DNA from: Thalia democratica
Taxonomy: Eukaryota
Reading direction: 5' to 3'
DNA length: 64,000 bases
NCBI GenBank assembly: GCA_965202585.1
Contig: OZ241827.1
Span: 48,298,001-48,362,000, forward strand
The position numbers and the translations under genes are program-made. This document shows positions 2,064-54,039 of this stretch, piece by piece. Numbering within the stretch: position 1 is the stretch's first letter; every line of letters starts with the position of its first letter. The notes below the pieces were generated by a model that saw only the letters and a program-made list of their open reading frames with translations, made no database searches and was not told where the DNA came from.

Positions 2064-3254
2064 TTAACTAAATAAAGAGACTTTGTAATCAAATTCCTTC
2101 TGTTTACACAGTTCTGGTTTCTCCAAAAATATAGAGATAGCCTCCAACTTCACGAGATCAAACACACTATTGCAATGATGGATTATTCTAAATCTGGATA
2201 TGTCATATTTCCTAGTACAATCTCTATTATTTATTAGATGTTCTGCAACTGAAGATCTTTTTGCTGCGTTTTTTGTTGCTATTGTCTTAATTTCAGGTTC
2301 TTGTTCAATGAGTTTCAATACACAAGCAGGTAGATGTTCTTTTATCCTGGTTTTTAAGTGCCTAGAGGTCTGACCGATATAGCTCTTTTCGCAAGAGCAA
2401 TTAAACTTGTACACTATACAACTTTTGTCTTGGTCTGGTATCGGGTCCTTCAACTGCACTTTTAATAAAGATTTTGAAAGAAATATAACTCTTGGAAGCA
2501 CTTGATTGTAAGATGTTTTTGTTAAGTCTTTTACTTTGCTCTCAAATACTCGTGATTTTTCTCCAATATAAGGTATTTTTAAAATTGCTGTGAACTTCTC
2601 CGGTCCAAATAGCCTAGGTTGGTTTATGTTATTGTGGTGTGATTTTATCACCTTCTTAATCAAATCTGGTGGGTAACCATTTTTTATTAAAATTTCTTTT
2701 ATTCTCTCAACCTCTGAATGAAGTAATTTTTTCGAACAGATTCTGTATGCTCTATGGTACAGTGTTTTGATTAGGTTTACTTTTCGTTTCTTACTACAAA
2801 ACGATTGGTAGTGTAAGTATTGCCCAGTGAAAGTTGTTTTTCTATAGACATTCGTTAAGAAGCTTGTTTTATCTTTTATTATTAGTATATCTAAAAATGG
2901 TAGCTGGTTGTTCTCTTCTACTTCTCTAGTAAAAGAAATATTTTTATGTAAAGAGTTTAATTTTTGAAAAGTAGCTTCATTTTCACTTTCTATAACCAAA
3001 CAATCGTCAACGTATCTTATGTAGACAACCTGTGAAGACAAATCGTCAGCAATTTTGGATTCTAAATATCCGATAAAAATATTCGCAAGAGTAGGACCCA
3101 AAGGTGACCCCATGGCCACGCCGTCTATCTGACTGTAAATTGTATTATTGAAACTAAACTGTACATCACTCATTACTATTTTCATCAGCTTTATAAAATT
3201 ATTCTTCTCTAAGTTAGGTTTTCTTATTTCATATAATTTGTCAGCACTTACCAA
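2064..3254 (-). mobile_element. Penelope-like retroelement, 5'-truncated RT + GIY-YIG endonuclease ORF
   Basis: The 396-aa ORF has RT motifs QIDGVAMGSPLGP and YVDD, the PLE thumb region (FLDILI...TNVYRKTTFTGQYLHY) and a GIY-YIG domain (IVYKFNCSCEKSYIGQTSRHLKTRIKEH...LEAISI...KPELCKQKE). It starts at TTG after a stop, so the N-terminus is missing. Confidence 0.93.
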
Positions 3255-6603: not shown

Positions 6604-8539
6604 TTACTCCTCATCAGAGGACGAGGAAGAAGATGAGGAGGAGTGATTCACAGCTCCTGCCGATGGTTTCTCTTGGTATTGGTTCAACGCAGCTTCTTGT
6701 GAATGTTGAACTTCTGCATATGTTGGAGGAAGATCAGATTGGAAGTGCAGTTGTGCTTGGTTCACCTTAAATTTTATAAAAAATCTTTAATTATCATATT
6801 TCGTTGAATTTTGGTTAAAACTCTAAAAAGTGTTTTATATACTTTAGGTTTTTTCTAATGTTTGATCTTTTAGATTTTTATTATTTCTAAATAGAGTGAT
6901 ATTGTAAAGATTATGAATTTCTCCAAACAGCTTCTTTTTAATTATTTCAGTCCCAACTATAAAAATTTTTTCATCTAAAGAAAACTTGAGTTATTATTGC
7001 AGAAAATAAGATTTTTAACATAATTACCCAATAAAAATAAATCGTTTTAATACTGCAAAATTATGCTTATATAAATACTTTAGTAAAGTTGAAATAATTA
7101 AATCGATAGTGATACTTTGTTTAAATATTTAAACTTTAATAATATGTCTGGAGAGGCAGTGGACTCGTCTCAATTACAACATAGCTAAAGTTTCAATACA
7201 CTTTCATTTTTTTGACATAAAGTGAATAAAAAATATTTTGTTATTAAAGTCTTATGCTTTTGATGAAATAAATTTAATTATTAAACAAAGTAAAAATGTT
7301 AACTAACATAAGCACAATATTTTTACCACAAAAAAATTTAATTTTTAAGTAACTTCAATATCAACTTAAATACCTGGTAGGCAACAGGTTGCGGAGCGAT
7401 GTTTTGACGCTCAACGTCAACAGTGTAAGCTGCCTGACGTGCGACTACCTCATCCTCCTTCGTGCAACAGCTAGTAACCGACTGACACAAACACATGCAC
7501 AATCCAACGAAAAAACAGAAAAGCACAAGCGGTGTCCAAAAATCTGTTAAATCCAATGTTTTGATAACATTACAAACAGAGGCTATTTGTTAACATACTT
7601 AATGTTTCGGAGCAAATTTTGATTTAAGAATTTTATGAATAATAAGTTAAAGTTCTTACAAATTAGATAAGTATTTATTTATATTAAAAGTATATCAATG
7701 TAGTTATTTAACTAACACCACAAGTACCACACAGGGGTGTACCAGCAACAATGAACTTCATCATCATAAATTCCCTGGCAGCAATACCCGATTGTTGTGG
7801 AAGTGTCTAAAAAATAAATATATTTTCTTGTTTTAATAAGCTGTATAAACTAAAGTGCTAAGTAATGACTTTAAATACAAAATACTAAATGTTTTGAGAC
7901 AGTCTAAAGAATAATTTTTTTGGCGAAAGTTAAATTATTTATGTTCCATCTTATTAAAGAAAAGTAGTTTTGATATTTTAACATTACTAAGAACAAAATT
8001 TTTAAGAGGCAAAAGTATTTTAATATTTATTCTTAGATATTTTTTATAAATTTTTTATAAATTTGATTATTTTTCAAACCTGTGCATATCAACAATGTAT
8101 CATTTTTCGGCTCTGGATGATGTACTACACACGAGTCCAAAGCCTAAAAAAGTAAACTTAACTTTTAGCGAAAGAACATAATTTGTTTAACAGCTACTTT
8201 TATAAAGGTTTATATTGTAACCTTTAAATTGAAGTTTGAAAATTAAAGTGGCAACTTTTAGAAGTTACTTTTTACTTTTTTAGTTATGTATATAGTTGAA
8301 TATAAAAACGCTTTAATCAAAAAACAAATTTTTAACATCTTATAAAAACAATTAAAAATATAAAAAAGTTTACAATCCAGTATTCTTATCTTACTTAGTT
8401 GTTTGTGTTAAAATTAGTTAGGAGTAAGTTAATTTATACTTAAAAGAAAACAATTTTTTCACAAACTCTAAATTAAAAAAATTACCTGCGCTCCAATCAC
8501 AAAACAAAGGACTGCTAAAACTTTTAAAAGTAAGTTCAT
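6604..8539 (-). CDS. Small type I membrane protein, Shisa-like/WBP1/VOPP1-type (179 aa, 5 exons)
   Basis: Exons 8539-8486, 8143-8080, 7806-7717, 7543-7374 and 6765-6604, all GT-AG and phase-consistent (540 nt). The protein has a signal peptide (MNLLLKVLAVLCFVIGAQ), a Cys-rich ectodomain (C..C..GYCC..HCCW), an aromatic WYLWYFW lead-in to a TM helix, juxtamembrane cysteines, a PPTY motif and a Ser-rich acidic tail. Confidence 0.85.
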
Positions 8540-10622
8540 GCTATACTACAAAAAATAAAACTAAGTTATCTAGACTTATAAAACCTTCAGTATTTTATTA
8601 CCTTTGTTTTTATCAAAAGACACAGTAAATATTTAATTATTAACCTTTCTCAGATGACATCTTTAATATGTAACTAGTGACATCATTATATTTGCGTTCA
8701 ATAGCTAGCTTAAACAAGATAACTCTAGTACAGTTTAGATAAAACATTTTTTCTCTAATGTTACGTTTTAAATTACCGTATTTTTCCATAAACATTTTAT
8801 AGCAAATTTTTTAATATTTCGAGAATAAAAAGATTATTTTTATTTGAATTTTGATACATAAAACTTTTATACCAATAACCATCTAGACATATTTTTACAA
8901 GGTTTTGTCTAACTAGTTTAGAAACTTCTAACAAAACAATAAAGAAACTGAGTATTTCACAAAAAGTTTTGAAAATTCCAACTTGTTATTGTAAATACTG
9001 AAAACAAAAATAAGTATAATAAACAAACAAGAGAAAATTAAAATTTTTAAGTAAATCAATATTTTCAGCAGCACCTCCTATAAAATAGTAATAAATATAT
9101 GTGAAGTCAGCTAACTATTGTAACATATCTCTTTTACAAGAGTTATACGACTTTTAATTAAAACAAGTTGTACAAACATGTTTTAGTTTACAACTTTACT
9201 ATAGCAAAAAGCATTCAAAAGTAAGTATTTCAATCCTTAAATTACTTCTTTTACAAGTCGGTGACCTATAGAAAACCTAATAAATTCTTCTATTAGATTA
9301 AACCGTTTGAAATATTTGTATAAACATTTTTAAGGCTTTACAGCATAAAAATAAAAGTGTTAAATAATTCAAAGTCCCGTCATCAATAAAAATGTTTGTT
9401 GTTGAAAATTTACTTATTTCCTTTTTGAACACTTTTAGACTTTATCTAAGAACCTTTATTTAACCATCACAAACATTGTTTGATATCAATAGATAGGTAG
9501 CTTAAAAGATATATAAATACAGGTCCTTTATACAACTTTTTAAATATGGCTTTAGATATCTTCAGCTATATAAATTATAAAATCTATACTTATAAAAACC
9601 GAATGCAAATAAAGATAAAATAGTTTTCTACCTAAAAGGTAGTAACTTTTGAAATTAACTATAACAAGTTACAAGTCCGTTGTTTGTCGTTAGATATGTT
9701 AAAGATGAAATATTTTTCAAACAACTATTTAAGACATAACTAATTTGTATGCATTCAATCGTTTAAGTTGCACGTTTTTTCTAGAGTATTCTTTAACTTA
9801 AAAACCCTTATAAAACTAAATTACACTGGTCTTTAGATTACTAGACTACTCAAAAAAATATTAAAATATTTACATAATAATAAGACTTTAACTAATAAAA
9901 AATTAAACTTAAAATAGTATTAATTATATAATTAGTTTTAAAAAATATAAAGTAAATTGGAATGCTTTTAACTTTGTAGGAAGTAAATATGATGTTTTAA
10001 AGTTTTGTACTTACCATATTAAAATGTTTTAGTAAAAAAAAGTAAAATGTTTTAACTTAAAAATTAACAAAAATTAAGTTTCTAATTATAAATATGTGAT
10101 TGGATGTACTTTTCATGGGTATTGTAGTATCACACTAATTTTTCTTAATAAAGAAAGTTTATAAAATTCTGAACATTTTAAAATATTTTTCTCACATACT
10201 TGTTTTCAGATTTTACTTTTAGACTTTAATTGAAATTTAGGACGTCCAAACTTATTAGAAAGAAAAAATTTCCAAGAAAAAAAGTAAAAGTTTTTCTAAA
10301 TTGGACTCCACGGCCCTTTATTTACTATAAAACAAAATAATAAATAATCATAAACAAAGTACAGAAACTTTATTTGACTTAGATAACCTTACTGTAGGTG
10401 AACTGATTTGTTTATTCATTTGATTCTTGCTACTTTAGCAAAATATTGAAATTAAAACATTGAGAAGAATTATTTTTAGCTCAGCACAAAATGAAATGAT
10501 TATTTTTAGAGTTGCGGATAACTCTACCTACAACATAGTTAAGTCACCAAAAAGTAATAATTTAAACTAGCCTAATAATATTTATTTTAGTAACTTAGTT
10601 TATTGAACACAATAAAAAAATC

Positions 10623-10698
10623 AGCGCTCAAACATTTCGGTCAAAGGACTCTATGCATAGAAAGATCTTTGGTCATCGAGCTACACATCAAGGGATTC
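10623..10698 (-). repeat. Unclassified ~80-bp dispersed repeat, diverged copy 2
   Basis: GCGCTCAAACATTTCGGTCAAAGGACTCTATGCATAGAAAGATCTTTGGTCATCGAGCTACACATC aligns with 30871-30940 (GTGCTCAAAATACTTGATCCTAGGACTTGGTGCATGAATAAAAACTTTCGGTTATCGAGTCGCACACC). Confidence 0.5.
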
Positions 10699-11769
10699 GA
10701 AACCGTTAACATACTCAAATGCAGTAACTTTATTTTAAAAGTTTTTTTTTGTTATATGTTTTAATATCCAGCTGTAATTAATGCAATACTTTAAGTGCAT
10801 GATGTATCAAAATATTATGATACTTTAATTCTAAACCAAAACAGCATGTTGCTTTAAAATACTTAAAGTAATGTATTTCGATACAAATCTTTTAATAGTT
10901 TTTTTTCTTAAAAGTTAAATTTTTACTCTTAAAAAAAATTATAACAACATTTTAAGTAAATAAGTAGTCTTTGGATATTCGTGGCTGCAATAGTACTGCT
11001 CAATTTTTACTGACTTAAATTTGAGTACTGTTTAATTTTAATTTAAACTGGTTTTAGCTTTACTTAAATATTCAAAACATCTACCTGTTGTATGCTTGGG
11101 TGGGATTTAAATTTCATATTCAAAATTTTGCGTAGTGATAGAAGTTTAAATACTATTACCGTATTGCTGTATTATTCCTCATTTGTGTAAATAAGTTTAC
11201 ATAATACTAATAAAAAAGATACTAAAAAAGTTCTAATGCAGCCAGCTCAGTAAAATTGATTATTAAAAAGTATTTTTTTACATAATTTCCACTGACCATA
11301 TTTGTGAGCCTCTATTCTTTTAAGGTTCACAAAACAATTTTCTCATACCTATTTGTTAATAAATCCTTTTAATATTTTAACTATTTTTGCTATTTAGTGT
11401 CAAAACTTTTTTTTTCTGTAAAAAAATCTTAATATCTTATTGTACTTTAATAATAAACATAACTATTTAAAAGTTTTCACATTGAGTTCCTTTATCAAGT
11501 TTAAAACAAGACTCGTAGTTAAAAACAGTTGAAAGTTTATTTATTTTTAAATATTTTTTTTTAATATAAATAGAAATTATGCAATGTTTTTAACTTAACT
11601 AGTCTAATTCAGAAGCTTATACTAACTAAATTATAATATTCAACGATAACAGAGCTTTATATTGACACTATTAAATTTAACATAGAACAATACAGATTAC
11701 AACTTGTTTAAATATAGTATTTTTAAACAACAAATTTCATAAACATAAAAAACTTTGTTTTGATAAAAA

Positions 11770-12110
11770 AAGACATCATTGATAAGTTCAGTTGTCACTG
11801 TGCTATAGATAAAGTGGGAAAAGATGTTGATATTATTTACAATTAGATCATCATGTGGCGAAAAACATTGAAAATTGGATCAAGACTGGAAAACTTGTTT
11901 GACAAACAAAGAAATTTTTTTGTTTGAAATTAAGTAGGTTGTATTGGACAATCATGAGTCGTCCATGATTTTATACCAATAACTTAACGTTTCATAATAC
12001 GTATGTAGTTTAGAGTTTTTTAGTTTTGCTTCAATATCCTAGATAGTATAACTATAAATCTAAAAACTCAATTCATTAAATAAATAAAAGAATATTTAAT
12101 ACATTTTTTA
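11770..12110 (+). mobile_element. Possible highly decayed PLE GIY-YIG remnant
   Basis: Fragmentary frames DIIDKFSCHCAIDKVGK and CIGQS resemble the PLE motifs VVYKFxCxCxxxYVGKT and SAIGQHL. Many stops and frameshifts. Confidence 0.3.
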
Positions 12111-41158: not shown

Positions 41159-42376
41159 TTATTTATAGTAGAAAAACTTCGGCACACCGCAAAATACAAT
41201 ACTGTTAATACGTTTTCTGTTTCCGCTAATATCTAGTAGTCTTGCAAAGCCTTTTCTTACATTTTTTCCAAATTTTGTGAAAAAATTTGTAGCTGTTGTT
41301 TTACTTTTCACCTTCACACTTTTTATACCGCAGGGCGAGACACGGTTAAATTTTTGAAAAGATTTCGATTTACCAGCAACAATATTTGCTGCTAAATTCT
41401 CATATTGAATCTTCATGAGCTGATCTGGGTCATCAGAACTAATTGAAGACTGTTTTTGAATCATAACTTTACCTGCTATATTCTCATAATTAGTCTTTAT
41501 TACTATACTTGGATCATCATAACTAATCAAAGAGTCTTGTTCAATTAGACATTTTGCTTCCAAATCATCACATTTAGAGTTCATTATTTGATTTGGATCA
41601 TCATAACTAATCAAAGAGTCTTGTTCGATCAAACTTTTTGCTTCCAAATCATCACATTTAGACTTTATCAATTGATTTGGCTCATCATAACCAATCAAAG
41701 AGTCTTCTTCAATTAGACTTTTTGCTTCCAAATTATCACATTTAGACTTTATCAATTGATTTGGCTCATCATAACTAATCAAAGAGTCTTGTTCGATCAA
41801 ACTTTTTGCTTCCAAATTATCACATTTAAAGTTCATTAATTGATTTGGCTCATCATAACTAATCAAGGAGTCTTGTTCGTTCAAACTTTTTGCTTCCAAA
41901 TTATCACATTTAAAGTTCATTAATTGATTTGGCTCATCATAACTAATCAAAGAGTCTTGTTCGATCAAAATTTTTACTTCCAAATCATCACATTTAGACT
42001 TTATTAATTGATTTGGATCATCATAACTAATCAAAGAGTCTTCTTCAACTAGACTTTTCTTTGCCTCTTTAACAGAAATGTCATTTTCATCATCCTCAAT
42101 GCAATTTTCTACACCATCAATCTCCAACACCTTTTCGGTTTTCCATCCATCTCCGAGCTCATTCATTTCATTATTAGAAATTTTTGCATTACAAAACTTC
42201 GATTCTTTCTCGAAATCGCCTTTTTCAAAATTGCCTTCTTCAAAACTCGGCATTTCGTTCACTGGGTTGCTCACTTCGGTTTTGTCATTTTAGCTGAATA
42301 GACTTTTCTTAAGGTGCTCCGAAATCACCTCCTCAATAATCATGTCAACGATTGCTTTTGAAAAATTGCAACTCAT
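41159..42376 (-). CDS. Unidentified intronless tandem-repeat protein (405 codons, one in-frame TAA at codon 29)
   Basis: ATG at 42376, 28 open codons, TAA at 42292-42290, then an open frame to TAA at 41159. AATAAA lies 8 nt after the stop (41151-41146). There are eight 28-aa repeats with no frameshift. No recognised domain. Confidence 0.6.
41375..42046 (-). repeat. Coding minisatellite, 84-bp unit x8
   Basis: Unit consensus EQDSLISYDEPNQLIKSKCDNLEAKSLI. Six units are well conserved; the last two are diverged. Confidence 0.95.
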
Positions 42377-43879: not shown

Positions 43880-44100
43880 GAAAACAAAATTTTTAGCCTG
43901 CATATGTCAATGTAAAGTTATAGAGACAATGATCGGTAGACGTTTCTGGAAATGGTTAACCGAAACTATGGCCCAACGCTTCCCTACCACAAAATTTTCA
44001 ATAGAAAAACAGTCGAAAATTTTGTACTCGTGCATGTCAAATATCAACAGACAGATAATCTCTAGGAAACCTCTACCGATTATAGTAATTTTAGATTTCT
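43880..44100 (+). mobile_element. Decayed PLE linker region (Neptune-like type)
   Basis: Across two frameshifts: ETMIGRRF / LEMVNRNYGPTLPYHKIFNRKTV / KILYSCMSNINRQII, matching the recalled PLE linker TNIGRKFL...HKIFNRNTVKISYSCMxNI. Confidence 0.65.
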
Positions 44101-45074
44101 AGGAAACAACTACTTAGCGTATAGGCCAACTACTAGCGACTAAATCATAACGTCACTAATACAAATCACCAAACAGTAGCAAACAAAGTATAAACACAGA
44201 GAATATTTAGCTTAACAAACACTCTTTAAGAAAAAAAGGAAGTATCAACCACAAAGAAGAAACTCCTTTATTAACATTTCATCGCTATTCATTAAGTTTT
44301 GTAAATACATAGAATTGTAGGCATGGGTATAGATTACTTTAAACCTACACTATGACCCATTATAAAAAGATAATAACATTAACCTAACTAACAATGATAC
44401 TGATATTAGATAATGCTTAGCGCACCTCTATATAAAACTAGGCATGACATTCAATATATAAATTGTATAAAAGAACAGTTGCTAAAACGAACAAAAATAC
44501 AAAGAACATAAACTTTAGAAATTACTTTAAATGTCCTCAAAACTTTTACACTTTAAATTCTCAGAAAACATACTAAAGAACGTATAGCATAATAATACAT
44601 TTAACTACTTAGAATTTAAATCAAAAGACTGCTTATAATAAATAACATGTTTACAATTACATGTTTGTATTTTTACATAATACAAACATTTACATACATA
44701 TAACATGTTTACATGTGATACAATAACATGTATTCTCGAACATATAACAACTGTATATATAGTTAGAACAAAAACTTTTAAAAAATTGCAAATTATGCAA
44801 AGGTTACTAATTTAAAATTTTATTATTTTAAGAAACACAGTTACACTGTTTCACCGCAAAGCGGATTTTCAAGCTATAAATCTGTAATAAAATGATAATG
44901 TTACAAATGATAAAAAATATAAAATTTATGTGAGTTAAGTTATATGTTGAGAACATTAAAATTAAAAAAAAATATGTATACATATATAAAAGATTTTATG
45001 AAATGGTCTGGTTTATAGTGCTCGACAAATTGAATTGGAGCTAAATATTTATTTGATTATATAAAAAACCATAG

Positions 45075-45139
45075 TTTAGATTTAGACGACCGTTTCGTAT
45101 ATGAGATATAAAATTCCATATACTCCTCAATAAGCTAAA
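45075..45139 (-). ncRNA. Type I hammerhead ribozyme copy with C3U core substitution
   Basis: Minus strand reads UUUAGCUUA UUGAGGA GUAUAUG GAAUUUUAUAUCU CAUAUAC GAAA CGGUC GUC UAAAUCUAAA. Confidence 0.75.
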
Positions 45140-45425
45140 GTTTATTACAGTGTTAAACATAAATTTAAAATTTAAAAATTTTTATAGTAAAGTTTGGAAA
45201 AGGTAATATTAGAAGTTTTTTTTAAACAACTAGAAAAATCTTTAAACATTTAAAACATTTTTATAATATAACCTTTTCAAATCTTTCCAAAATGCATAAA
45301 TTAACAAGTTCAGCGTATTTTTTCAAACTCAGCTTACTGTACAATAAACTCTATCTATTCTTACTACGTCATAATTACTATAAAATTTTTCAAAAGCTTA
45401 ATTTCTGTTTAACATTGTTATAAAC

Positions 45426-45490
45426 TTTAGCTTACTGAGGAGTATATGGGGTTTTATATCTCATATACGAAACGGTCGTCTAAATCTAAA
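45426..45490 (+). ncRNA. Type I hammerhead ribozyme with intact core
   Basis: UUUAGCUUA CUGAGGA(45435-41) GUAUAUG-GGGU UUUAU AUCU-CAUAUAC GAAA(45469-72) C GGUC GUC(45478-80) UAAAUCUAAA. All core residues are present; helix II is 7 WC bp plus 4 further pairs, helix III is 2 bp, and helix I is 3+5 bp. Confidence 0.85.
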
Positions 45491-45774
45491 CTATTGTTTT
45501 TTATATAATCAAATAACTATGTATACATATATATATCAAGAAAATATTAATGCTATAAAACTTTTAATAAATATCTTATTAGATAGACACTCCGTCAATT
45601 TTAATTTAAACCCATTAGTTAAAAGTATATTAGTTAACCAACTACTTGGCCTAATAATTTTCCAACTCCATATTAATGGTAGTTTTGGTTTTTCAACGTC
45701 AAAACCTTATTTTTATTCACTCTTCATCATCAACTTCAGAATATCTAGAGTAAGTTTTAATTTATGAATTCATG

Positions 45775-45860
45775 GCCCCCTGTGGGTCCTTTACTGCTCA
45801 TAGCCCCTTAATTTCTGTAATGGCTCCCAAGGGGACCACTTAGCCCAGTTATGAACCCCT
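45775..45860. mobile_element. hAT-like MITE end fragment
   Basis: Ends CAGTTATGAACCCCTG (CAGGGGTTC-type TIR) after GC-rich GGCCCC subrepeats. Confidence 0.4.
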
Positions 45861-46081
45861 GGTATAGTTTATACAGATTTATTTCTAACGTACTTTATGT
45901 AGTTATAAATATCCTTTATCAAACGTAGCTTTATAATGACGCATGGCTATGTATAAATAAACTAGTCTACTCTCACTAAATATCATTTTAAGTTAGCCTG
46001 CTATATAAGTACTATAAATTTGTTCTGTTACGTTTTTAACTAAAGAATTTTAACATAAGTCACTTATTTTCAAATAAAAGT

Positions 46082-46118
46082 TTATTAATTAATTTCGTTT
46101 AGCGCATCCTCAGAATAA
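46082..46118 (-). ncRNA. Minimal type I hammerhead ribozyme motif downstream of a PLE
   Basis: Minus strand reads UUAUU CUGAGGA UGCGCUAAAC GAA AUUAAU U AAUAA: 5-bp helix I, intact core, palindromic helix III, about 280 nt after the PLE stop at 46395 on the same strand. Confidence 0.55.
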
Positions 46119-46394: not shown

Positions 46395-46985
46395 CTATTT
46401 ATAAAGTTTTAAATTGTAAAAATCTCTTTGTTTGCAAATTTTTGACTCGCGAGTTCTAATAAACAAAGATTCTAGAACTGAGAGATGGTAGGTGTTTCGA
46501 GCTCGGGATAGAATTTCGAACCTACTATCCAGGTAGTTCTCGGCACAAACAGGGTTGTTGAGGAGGTGCTGATAAATAGCTGACTCTTCACCTTTAGGCT
46601 TCACGTCGTCATTAAAATTAAACCTTTTTAGCTTTTCGTGACATGCTGCTCTCGCCTGACGAGATGTTCGACCTACGTAGTCATTTCCGCAATGAAATTT
46701 TAATATGTATACTACATTACTCAAATCATGGGTAGGTGTGGCATCTATCACAATTCCGTTAAGCGGGCGGTTGGTTTTGTACACAACACGTAGCGAAACG
46801 CTATTAAAGGTGGATTTTATAGCTAATGAAGCTTGCTTAGCCAGTCTTATTGAGTGATCACCCATATAAGGAAGGCGGAGGTAGACTGGGCAAGGATGTG
46901 GGCCGAAAGGTAAGTGGTTCATTTTGGACTGAGTTTCCTTAATTGTCTTCTTGATGACTGTTTCGGGGTAACCTAATGAGAATAA
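46395..46985 (-). mobile_element. Penelope-like element, 5'-truncated (linker + GIY-YIG)
   Basis: LGYPETVIKKTI...YLRLPYMG...LRVVYKT...SNVVYILKFHCGNDYVGRTSR...SAIYQHLLNNPVCA...LSVLESLFIR...ICKQR. Confidence 0.9.
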
Positions 46986-50668: not shown

Positions 50669-51309
50669 GGGCATAGGGGGGGGGGTAAACACCCTTTTTT
50701 GGTTTTTGATCTTATTTTATATAGTTTTTACTAAGCTACAATATGCTTTTTACAGATTTTAAAAATTCAAAATAATTTTTGAGATAAAGGCGGTCAAAGT
50801 CGGAGGCAACAATAGGATCCTTATGGGAGGCGCAAACTAAAACGGCAAAAATAGACTATTTCACTAAAAATCTATCTTCTCCTACGTTTTTTGAGATAAC
50901 TATCTCAAACTTTCAGGAAATGTTCCTTGCAATATTTGAAAAATTCTGTCAGAACTGTTTTTTTGTTTATTTTTTTTATAATTTTTTTGTTTTTAAATTT
51001 TTTCAAAATTCCTTCCGACAGAATTTTCTAAATATATCAAGGAACATTTCCTGAAAATTTGAGGTAGTTATCTCAAAAAACGTAGGAGAAGATAGATTTT
51101 TAGTGAAATAGTCTATTTTTGCCGTTTTAGTTTGCGCCTCCCATAAGGAACCTATTGTTGCCTCAGACTTTGACCGCCTTTATCTCATAAAATACTTTTA
51201 ATTTTTTAAATCTGTAAAAAGCATTTTGTAGCTTAGTAAAAACTATATAAAATAAGATCAAAAACCAAAAAAGGGTGTTTACCCCCCCCCCCCCCCCCCC
51301 CCTATGCCC
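50669..51309. mobile_element. Foldback Kolobok-like MITE (near-perfect palindrome)
   Basis: TTAA|GGGCATAG...CTATGCCC|TTAA. Arms of about 280-290 bp are reverse complements around a short AT spacer. Confidence 0.9.
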
Positions 51310-51439: not shown

Positions 51440-51727
51440 AGTATTCAAAAATAAATTTTGCATTCAATCTTTTTAAAATTTAATAAAACACTCTAAGTAA
51501 AAATTTGAAGAAGATTGCATATAAAATGAAGGAGGAGATATATTTTTATTTAAATGGTCTTTTTTTGTTTGCACCTTCCATTAGGAACCTATTGAGGTCA
51601 CTTTGATTGCTCATGTCTCAAAAACTAATTTAAATTTTTTCAAGCGGTTAAAAATGTCTGATAGCTCAGATAAAACTATATAAAATAAGATCAACTTGTA
51701 AAATTCAAGGTGGACCCCCCTATGCCC
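51440..51727 (+). mobile_element. Partial Kolobok-like MITE (right end)
   Basis: Matches 60715-60998 and ends GGACCCCCCTATGCCC|TAAA. Confidence 0.7.
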
Positions 51728-52019: not shown

Positions 52020-52660
52020 AAAACATTTTTTACAAAAATTAAATTTGGCTTTTATATGAAAGCTTTAAATACAAATTATAAGCCAGTTTTTATAGAGTTC
52101 AAAAATAACATTTAACTTTTGAGATATTTTATTTTTTGTAAAAAGTTTCTGATACAAACGTATGGACCACAGATTTTTTGTGGTCAATTTTCTTGGAAAT
52201 TTTAAAATTCACTAAAAATCTTTCTCCTCCTTCATTTTTCAAGCAATCTTCTTCAAATCTAAAGAAATGTTCATTATATTATAAGAAAAAATATGTTGCT
52301 TATGAATTTTAATAATTATAAAAAAAAAAAAATATCAAAAAAATTAAAAAAAAAATTTTTTTTTCAAAAAAAAATTGATTTTTTTTTTAAATTCCAAAGT
52401 AACGTTTTTTAGTTATTGTATAAAGATTAGACTAAAAGTTTGAAGAAGATTGTTTGAAAAATGTAGGAGGAGATAGATTTTAAATAAAATAGTTTTTTTT
52501 TTGATGTTTTAGTTTTCCCTTCCAATAGGGAACCTATTATGCGGCCCGTCTTTGACTAGTCATATCTCAAAAAATAATTTAAATTTTTCAAAACAATAAA
52601 GAGCATCTTCAAGCTTAGAAAAAACTCTATAAAATAAGATCAACTTGTAAAAAACATGGC
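52020..52660 (+). mobile_element. Kolobok-like MITE lacking terminal TIRs
   Basis: Shares CAAACGTATGGACC and GGAACCTATT internal blocks with 60312-60998. Confidence 0.6.
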
Positions 52661-53460: not shown

Positions 53461-54039
53461 ATGAGTTTTTTTACTTGCAACTCTGACAGTCAATCTGATG
53501 TCACAACATCTGATTCAGAAAACGAAGAAGAGCAAAAACCTTCTGTACAAAGCAAAGATGAAGAAGAGAAAGATGTTTCAAGAAAAAGAACTTTGCCATC
53601 ACCAATTGACGCAATCACTTCAGGTAAAGTTCCAAAGTTTGTCACAACTCATTTACGTGATGAATTGGACTGGGACAAAATTAAGAAGGAAGCACCACCA
53701 GTTCCTGAAAAAGAAATTAAACCTTGGGCACTCAACCCAGTCACCATACAATCAACAGCACCAAGTGACCATAGACCTGATATTGCTTTGACCAAGCAAG
53801 TTCCTCAGACGTTGGTTCCTAAAGAAAAGGTTGAGCAAGAAGATGTGCAACAACCTGAAAAGATAATTGATCATGCAATTAAATGGTCTAAAATGTACAA
53901 AGACACCACCACGCTCAAAGGCCGCCCAATAATGGATTTTGATGATCCAGAAATGAATACGTTTTGTTATACAGATGTAAATAAAGACAAAAACGCTTTC
54001 AAAAGAAGTACAGACAATAAAAATTCAAAAGATGATTAA
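53461..54039 (+). CDS. C1orf52: UPF0690/C1orf52 homolog (192 aa, single coding exon)
   Basis: Acidic Ser-rich N-terminus, KRTLPSP..AITS...PKF....DELDWDK...APPVPEKEIKPW and DHAIKWSKMY, matching recalled C1orf52 motifs (KRLPGP, IDWE...APEEPPKEFKIW, DMAIKWSNIY). AATAAA at 54067. Confidence 0.8.
   Translation: MSFFTCNSDSQSDVTTSDSENEEEQKPSVQSKDEEEKDVSRKRTLPSPIDAITSGKVPKFVTTHLRDELDWDKIKKEAPPVPEKEIKPWALNPVTIQSTAPSDHRPDIALTKQVPQTLVPKEKVEQEDVQQPEKIIDHAIKWSKMYKDTTTLKGRPIMDFDDPEMNTFCYTDVNKDKNAFKRSTDNKNSKDD

Follow-up and report, generated by a model that had tools for sequence, protein, structure and literature searches.

Animal non-LTR retrozymes carry type I hammerhead ribozymes in non-coding repeats of 150-450 bp that are low in GC and have target site duplications (TSDs) of more than 4 bp (Cervera & de la Pena 2020, PMC7229834). 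Canonical natural hammerheads have a helix I of 6 bp and a helix II of 4 bp. The hammerheads of Penelope-like elements (PLEs) and of metazoans have a helix II of 4-6 bp; their helix III is short, its loop is palindromic, and cleavage therefore proceeds through dimers (Cervera & de la Pena 2014, PMC4209133). PLE insertions are highly 5'-truncated; a second copy, inverted and likewise 5'-truncated, adjoins the 5' end, a tail is present on one side only, the TSD varies in length and the target is microsatellite-like (Craig et al. 2021, PMC8557442). For one PLE, reverse transcription has been shown to start internally (Frangieh et al., PMC11167929). The repeats of retrozymes have been argued to derive from the pLTRs of PLEs (2026 bioRxiv preprint 10.64898/2026.07.22.740005). 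The Didemnum genome paper reports only nine type I hammerhead matches (PMC8704543). No description of retrozymes in tunicates was found in the literature searched, and tunicates are not mentioned in PMC7229834.

In this study, a type I hammerhead motif at 45426-45490 and its surroundings were analysed in a stretch of 64,000 nucleotides (64 kb) of Thalia democratica DNA, hereafter the window, to which all coordinates refer. The motif lies within a longer interval, 44989-45517, which is quite likely a copy of a high-copy, non-coding hammerhead retroelement, namely, an animal non-LTR retrozyme or a non-autonomous PLE derived from a pLTR, copied by the reverse transcriptase (RT)/GIY-YIG enzyme of a PLE.

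Materials and methods

Contigs of four public runs were placed on 44700-45900 at 80% likeness. The runs comprised samples of organism A and organism B (X3 being the sample of organism B), a marine metagenome (X4) and a marine metatranscriptome (X12). Other copies of the family were sought with the pattern CTGANGAGT..ACGAAACGNNCGTC. The hammerhead descriptor required the core, four or more base pairs in helix II and six or more in helix I, and 300 dinucleotide shuffles were used as the null.

Structure of the hammerhead motif

The first-pass annotation had described an apparently intact hammerhead with every conserved core residue, a GUC site and predicted cleavage after 45480, and these core positions are all found in the sequence. 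On the plus strand, 45426-45490 reads UUUAGCUUA-CUGAGGA-[helix II]-GAAA-CGGUCG-UC-UAAAUCUAAA, and all invariant positions of a type I hammerhead are present. The parts of the motif are as follows:

45426..45490, plus strand: intact type I hammerhead of the right copy (sequence, descriptor scan, pair list with energies, and RF00163 at 17.5 bits)
45435-45441, plus strand: core C3 to A9, CUGAGGA (sequence)
45469-45472, plus strand: core G12, A13, A14 and A15.1, GAAA (sequence)
45479 and 45480, plus strand: core U16.1 and C17, with predicted cleavage 3' of C45480
45426-45434 with 45481-45490: helix I, 3+5 pairs, the open helix
45442-45468: helix II, in which base pair G10.1-C11.1 is G45442-C45468
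45472-45479: helix III and its loop, 2 bp (A45472-U45479 and C45473-G45478) with the tetraloop GGUC

The helices were also described correctly in that annotation. Helix II, given there as 7 Watson-Crick pairs extended by four more, is found as 11 pairs at 45442-45468, with seven Watson-Crick pairs followed by G.U, G-C, G.U and U-A and a loop of 5 nt, and it is indeed unusually long compared with the 4-6 bp of PMC4209133. Helix I consists of three A-U pairs, an asymmetric 1x2 internal loop 3 bp from the core (C45431 opposite A45484 and U45485) and five further pairs (45426-30 with 45486-90), in agreement with the small internal loop reported. A canonical contact between loop 1 and loop 2 is not evident, judging from sequence geometry alone, because helix II extends over 7-11 bp (11 bp in full) and the loop of helix I lies 3 bp from the core. 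The loop of helix III is near-palindromic. The proposed pairing of ACGGUCGU with a second copy of itself was recovered as an 8-bp helix with two central G.U pairs and a computed energy of -5.8 kcal/mol, and the two-molecule minimum free energy (MFE) prediction uses exactly this intermolecular helix. The Anolis PLE has an open reading frame (ORF) that begins with an ATG of helix II (PMC11167929); a corresponding frame was considered here and rejected, since it reaches a stop after 20 codons in both arms of the inverted repeat described below.

Comparison with chance expectation

The Rfam search that had been recommended as a check gave a divided answer. Hammerhead type I (RF00163, Hammerhead_1) was the top-scoring Rfam ribozyme family on the stretch and its model was aligned end to end, but the score of 17.5 bits (E 0.16 in a 321-nt search) fell below the gathering score of 34. 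No hammerhead was listed when the whole 64-kb window was searched at gathering and at E<=10. The model under-scores the motif because a helix II of 11 bp and a G.U-centred quasi-palindrome are unusual.

The core-only pattern matched two loci in the window versus 0.56 matches expected. The second match, CUGAGGA...CGAAA at 46083-46113 on the minus strand, 3' of a PLE ORF fragment, has no helix II and was dismissed as a chance match. With the full descriptor, 45426-45490 was the sole match in the 64-kb window, where the shuffles gave 0.013 matches per window; none of the 300 shuffles contained a match with helices as long as those observed. The MFE structure of the monomer is a competing fold of -18.0 kcal/mol, which pairs ACUG (45434-37) with CGGU (45473-76) and is 9 kcal/mol more stable than the hammerhead fold (-8.7 kcal/mol).

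The Rfam score below gathering, for which the E-value over the whole window would exceed 10, and an MFE fold that differs from the hammerhead fold would both fit an origin in which AT-rich DNA matches the hammerhead consensus by chance, or in which the motif is a regulatory ribozyme of the host with no relation to mobile elements. Such an origin is extremely improbable and is largely refuted by the descriptor expectation given above, by the duplication of the motif in an inverted arm within a high-copy repeat, and by the family depth, most of which still has the core residue C3 that is absent from the left arm. The rarity of the descriptor alone still leaves room for chance matches in a large genome, and the question is settled by context, namely, the second copy and the high-copy repeat.

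Inverted copy and structure of the insertion

A 149-nt inverted repeat (45042-45190 / 45375-45523) with 90% complementarity contains the hammerhead in its right arm. The inverted partner copy is 184 nt away; neither the inversion nor the broken core of the partner was mentioned in the first-pass annotation. The features of the locus, from left to right, are as follows:

44973..44988: left TSD, TATGTATACATATATA, the longest word common to the outer flanks
44989..45041, minus strand: one-sided extension of 53 nt outside the left copy (alignment; the right copy is without it)
45042..45190, minus strand: left arm, an inverted copy 5'-truncated at the equivalent of 45375 (repeat search and alignments)
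45075..45139, minus strand: second hammerhead with a broken core (arm alignment and contig letters)
45191..45248: linker of 58 nt between the inverted and direct copies, nearly single-copy (depth 389 versus ~75 in the flanks)
45249..45517, plus strand: direct copy of the high-copy repeat, to the extent matched by other copies (contig depth and match ends)
45375..45523, plus strand: right arm of the inverted repeat (repeat search and arm alignments)
45518..45533: right TSD, TATGTATACATATATA, as in the left copy

The insertion thus extends over 44989-45517 (529 nt) and is bracketed by a direct repeat of 16 nt. A shared flank word of this length was obtained in 1 of 3000 random placements of equal geometry in the window (p ~3e-4), and both arms are regarded as one insertion because the 16-nt TSD brackets the pair. 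The target is TA-microsatellite-like, and the GC content of the 44001-46000 bin is 26%. The motif had been placed outside any ORF, and none lies within 44989-45517, so this copy is either non-autonomous or truncated.

In the left copy, C3 of the hammerhead is changed to U (A at 45130 on the plus strand), and a residue that the core requires is therefore missing. Helix II of the left copy has AA where the right copy has GG (equivalents of 45450-51, in distal helix II), and the fold of the left copy is weak and no better than shuffles (z -0.96). No clear homology was found when the inner halves between the arms were aligned to each other. An RNA spanning both arms is predicted to form a hairpin of ~150 bp (-197 kcal/mol, z -21) in which both motifs are buried.

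The linker and the direct copy (45191-45517) together measure 327 nt, and the direct copy alone measures ~270 nt. The fold of this presumed 327-nt unit is no better than that of shuffles (z -1.3), which gives no support to the rod-like fold that had been considered for it. Beyond 45015, the consensus of other copies is ~70% like their sequence just before 45249, a likeness of loose ends that weakly hints at a closed or tandem unit of ~330 nt. A separate observation concerns the 53-nt piece at 45015-45067, of which 26 nt form the outer part of the left arm and 27 nt lie outside that arm. Its depth in X1 is ~150,000, ~2000x that of the flanks and 3-10x that of the hammerhead part, and other copies diverge at both of its ends. 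This piece probably represents the tail of a sister family of repeats that is more abundant.

Inverted arms of 149 nt whose 3' ends point outward, with a direct repeat around them, are also what would be seen in a DNA transposon of the fold-back or MITE-like type whose two terminal inverted repeats each contain a hammerhead. This arrangement is very unlikely to be the correct one, given that the two halves are unequal, with a direct copy of ~270 nt and an inverted copy of 149 nt plus a 53-nt extension on one end. A TSD of 16 nt is, moreover, long for cut-and-paste transposons. In other contigs, sequence resembling the left arm runs on into the upstream part of the unit (joints 45163/45322 and 45182/45350), so the boundary of the left arm is a truncation and not the end of an element. 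Contig joints labelled as lying on opposite strands were also examined as candidate variable inversion points and were rejected, because their coordinates reflect indel differences between copies that map partly to each arm. The locus is thus better read as a direct copy of a retroelement preceded by a 5'-truncated inverted copy, and the unequal end points of the two copies could be due to internal initiation of reverse transcription (PMC11167929).

Depth and variation of the repeat family

In run X1, the summed word depth over 45397-45478 was 33,000-54,000, versus 72-108 in the unique flanks. The depth over the hammerhead was 40,000-62,000 in X3 (42-150 in the unique flanks) and 7,500-12,000 in X4 (10-14 in the unique flanks). 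The element is a high-copy repeat family because its depth exceeds that of the flanks by a factor of hundreds (~400-800x the single-copy flanks, although summed contig depth is not equal to copy number), and this order of magnitude implies hundreds or more of related copies. Many contig matches share their limits, with starts clustered at 45248/9 and stops at 45480-84 or 45516-20.

The family majority retains the hammerhead. On the left arm, 89% of the depth at 45130 carries the letter of an intact C3. At 45449, 79% of the depth is A, so that an A-U pair takes the place of G.U at 45449-45461 in helix II. One of the two TCTAAA repeats directly after the cleavage site is missing from ~8% of the depth, and a helix I of 3+3 bp is still possible there. 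Each arm differs from the family majority at no fewer than five or six of the sites listed, and since these sites differ between the arms, both copies are somewhat decayed.

In the metatranscriptome X12, a few family contigs of low depth were present, one of them reading CUGAUGAGUAUAUGAGG; they may be DNA carry-over, as the repeat is so abundant. No transcription of the unique flanks of the element was seen in X12. The genome is represented in marine metagenomes, as would suit a planktonic animal.

The pattern scan for the family gave 0 matches in IMG/VR. In the JGI metagenomes, it gave 33 hammerhead-like loci, none of which has the helix II of the 45426-45490 family. About one third of the 33 loci (low in GC, ~31-40%) belong to one other hammerhead family with a CGAUCG helix III; a few further loci look like other hammerheads, and most of the GC-rich ones (>~50% GC) bear no resemblance to hammerheads and are probably chance matches. 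As a side observation, this other type I hammerhead family is represented by L004, L012, L018, L021, L022, L025, L028, L030, L032 and L033, and also by L013. This family, on JGI and ENA metagenome contigs of 31-40% GC, reads CUGAYGAGUCCC...GGACGAAACGAUCGUC, with a helix I that is usually GUAAG/CUUAC. Contigs with two copies have spacings of 267 nt (L022), 932 nt (L013) and 2082 nt (L025), and these contigs appear to be arrays of retrozymes or PLEs belonging to other organisms.

Penelope-like ORFs and other features of the window

Two PLE-related ORFs were found in the window:

2064-3254, minus strand: PLE ORF of 396 aa with an RT domain (YVDD; RVT_1, E 4e-8)
46395-46922, minus strand: divergent PLE fragment of 175 aa (homologous to the ORF at 2064-3254 at its GIY-YIG end, with 28% identity and E 5e-23)

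The C-terminus of the first ORF has a weak GIY-YIG match (E 5.5e-4; 20.6 bits versus a cutoff of 22.6), and this ORF is a 5'-truncated Penelope-like element. The nearest Atlas clusters of the PLE ORFs of the window carry RVT_1, HTH_animal and GIY-YIG. The second ORF lies ~900 bp from the hammerhead, and neither is physically connected with the hammerhead repeat. When the element was compared with the window by BLAST, it matched nothing but its own two arms.

These ORFs bear on an alternative in which an autonomous PLE has left these copies as its 5'-truncated tails (pLTR ends) and the hammerhead is the ribozyme of that PLE's own terminal repeats. PLE insertions are mostly 5'-truncated and hammerheads occur in their pLTRs (PMC8557442, PMC4209133), fragments of PLE ORFs are present in the window, one of them only 900 bp away, and the long helix II without an obvious loop-loop contact is a PLE-like trait. 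However, both ORFs are unjoined to the repeat, which finds only its own arms in the window, and many contigs share a single upstream match limit at 45248/9. The ~70% likeness of the loose ends, pointing weakly to a closed or tandem unit of ~330 nt, also speaks against truncated tails. We consider this alternative less likely, though it is the most serious of the rivals, and lean towards a non-coding repeat that is mobilised by a PLE enzyme acting in trans.

Several other features of the window were recorded. A relatively GC-rich repeat (GGGGTTCATAACTGGGCT..., minus strand) at 45684-45847 is very abundant, short and interspersed, with a depth of 100,000-170,000 in X1 and X3, and a further repeat at 44823-44904 has a depth of ~25,000. 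A fold-back cluster is formed by inverted arms of 279 nt (50676-50954 / 51013-51291; 95% complementary, separated by 58 nt); direct copies related to them lie at 51498-51710 and 52433-52659. The ORF at 41159-42274 on the minus strand (371 aa) contains acidic 84-nt (28-aa) tandem repeats in seven 84-nt steps and has no convincing Pfam family. The ORF at 53461-54039 on the plus strand (192 aa) matches Pfam DUF4660 (E 1.4e-8) and is probably an exon of a host gene.

Discussion

The first-pass annotation had suggested that the motif came from the terminal repeat of a PLE or from an element like a retrozyme, and this origin is strengthened by the inverted copy, the high depth in four runs, the 16-nt TSD and the PLE-type scar. 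A mechanism can be proposed by analogy with the described systems. In the source copies, the hammerhead would act mainly as a dimer, with ACGGUCGU of two neighbouring units forming an 8-bp helix III, and each core of the dimer would cut multimeric or pLTR transcripts after GUC. The resulting unit-length RNA, linear or circularised, possibly by a host ligase, would be the template for target-primed reverse transcription in trans by the PLE enzyme at a nicked target.

At the present locus, self-cleavage is doubtful according to the predicted structures, among them a helix III of only 2 bp in the monomer. The ribozyme of the right copy is probably idle, because the competing fold is more stable, no RNA was seen over the flanks and a read-through hairpin would bury both motifs. 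It is most likely a passenger without a host role, because the arms depart from the family majority, no transcription of the flanks was seen and the two-arm hairpin would hide the ribozyme. The motif at 45426-45490 is thus neither a novel nor a host-owned ribozyme; it belongs to a single unremarkable copy, probably inert, of a mobile repeat whose class is already known.

A bolder proposal would make the family hammerhead a distinct variant, active only as an inter-unit dimer without loop-loop contacts, with head-to-head insertions giving rise to long hairpin RNAs that feed small-RNA silencing of the family. The possible marks of such a variant are the 11-bp helix II, the short distance (3 bp) between the core and the loop of helix I, and the G.U-centred, quasi-palindromic helix III. 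We regard this proposal as unlikely. If it were true, the family would possess a built-in brake that has not been described for retrozymes, in an animal group whose retrozymes are not known to have been characterised.

The hammerhead has little significance alone, being one copy with a clear 16-nt TSD and a Penelope-type head-to-head scar. The insertion adds support to the proposal in the literature that the hammerhead repeats of animals owe their mobility to Penelope-like elements, and it documents the retrozyme/PLE hammerhead class in a lineage outside the retrozyme papers searched. It also provides a variant with a very long helix II, a hammerhead missed by the Rfam type I model at the gathering score. 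For annotators, the locus is a worked example in which a fold-back pair of ribozymes is an insertion scar and not a designed cassette.

Comparison with known systems

Compared with RF00163, positions 1-45 of the model are matched, and the core and the ACG..CGUC segment of helix III fit the consensus. The locus differs in a helix II insert of 23 nt, compared with 10 in the model, and in two non-standard pairs in the outermost part of helix I.

The hammerheads of PLE pLTRs are resembled in the long helix II with G10.1-C11.1 and in the small, quasi-palindromic helix III suited to dimers. However, the palindrome here is imperfect, with its two central G.U pairs, and unlike in the 'minimal' PLE hammerheads, helix III forms a hairpin and no bulged base is present between A9 and G10.1. 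As an insertion, the locus shares with PLEs the inverted 5'-truncated copy at the 5' end, the one-sided tail, the microsatellite-like target and a TSD, here of 16 nt, whereas its 529 nt contain no RT/GIY-YIG ORF.

Compared with retrozymes, several differences are seen. The pair at 45042-45523 is arranged head-to-head, whereas retrozymes are defined by a tandem direct layout; helix II has 11 bp here and ~4 bp in retrozymes; the internal loop of helix I is 3 bp away from the core, so that no canonical contact between loops 1 and 2 is evident; and the 327-nt unit, with its z of -1.3, contrasts with the strongly structured circles of some retrozymes. The locus is nevertheless like the retrozymes in its type I hammerhead, in being a non-coding, low-GC repeat of a few hundred nucleotides with a high copy number and a TSD longer than 4 bp, and in the presence of Penelope-like elements in the same genome.
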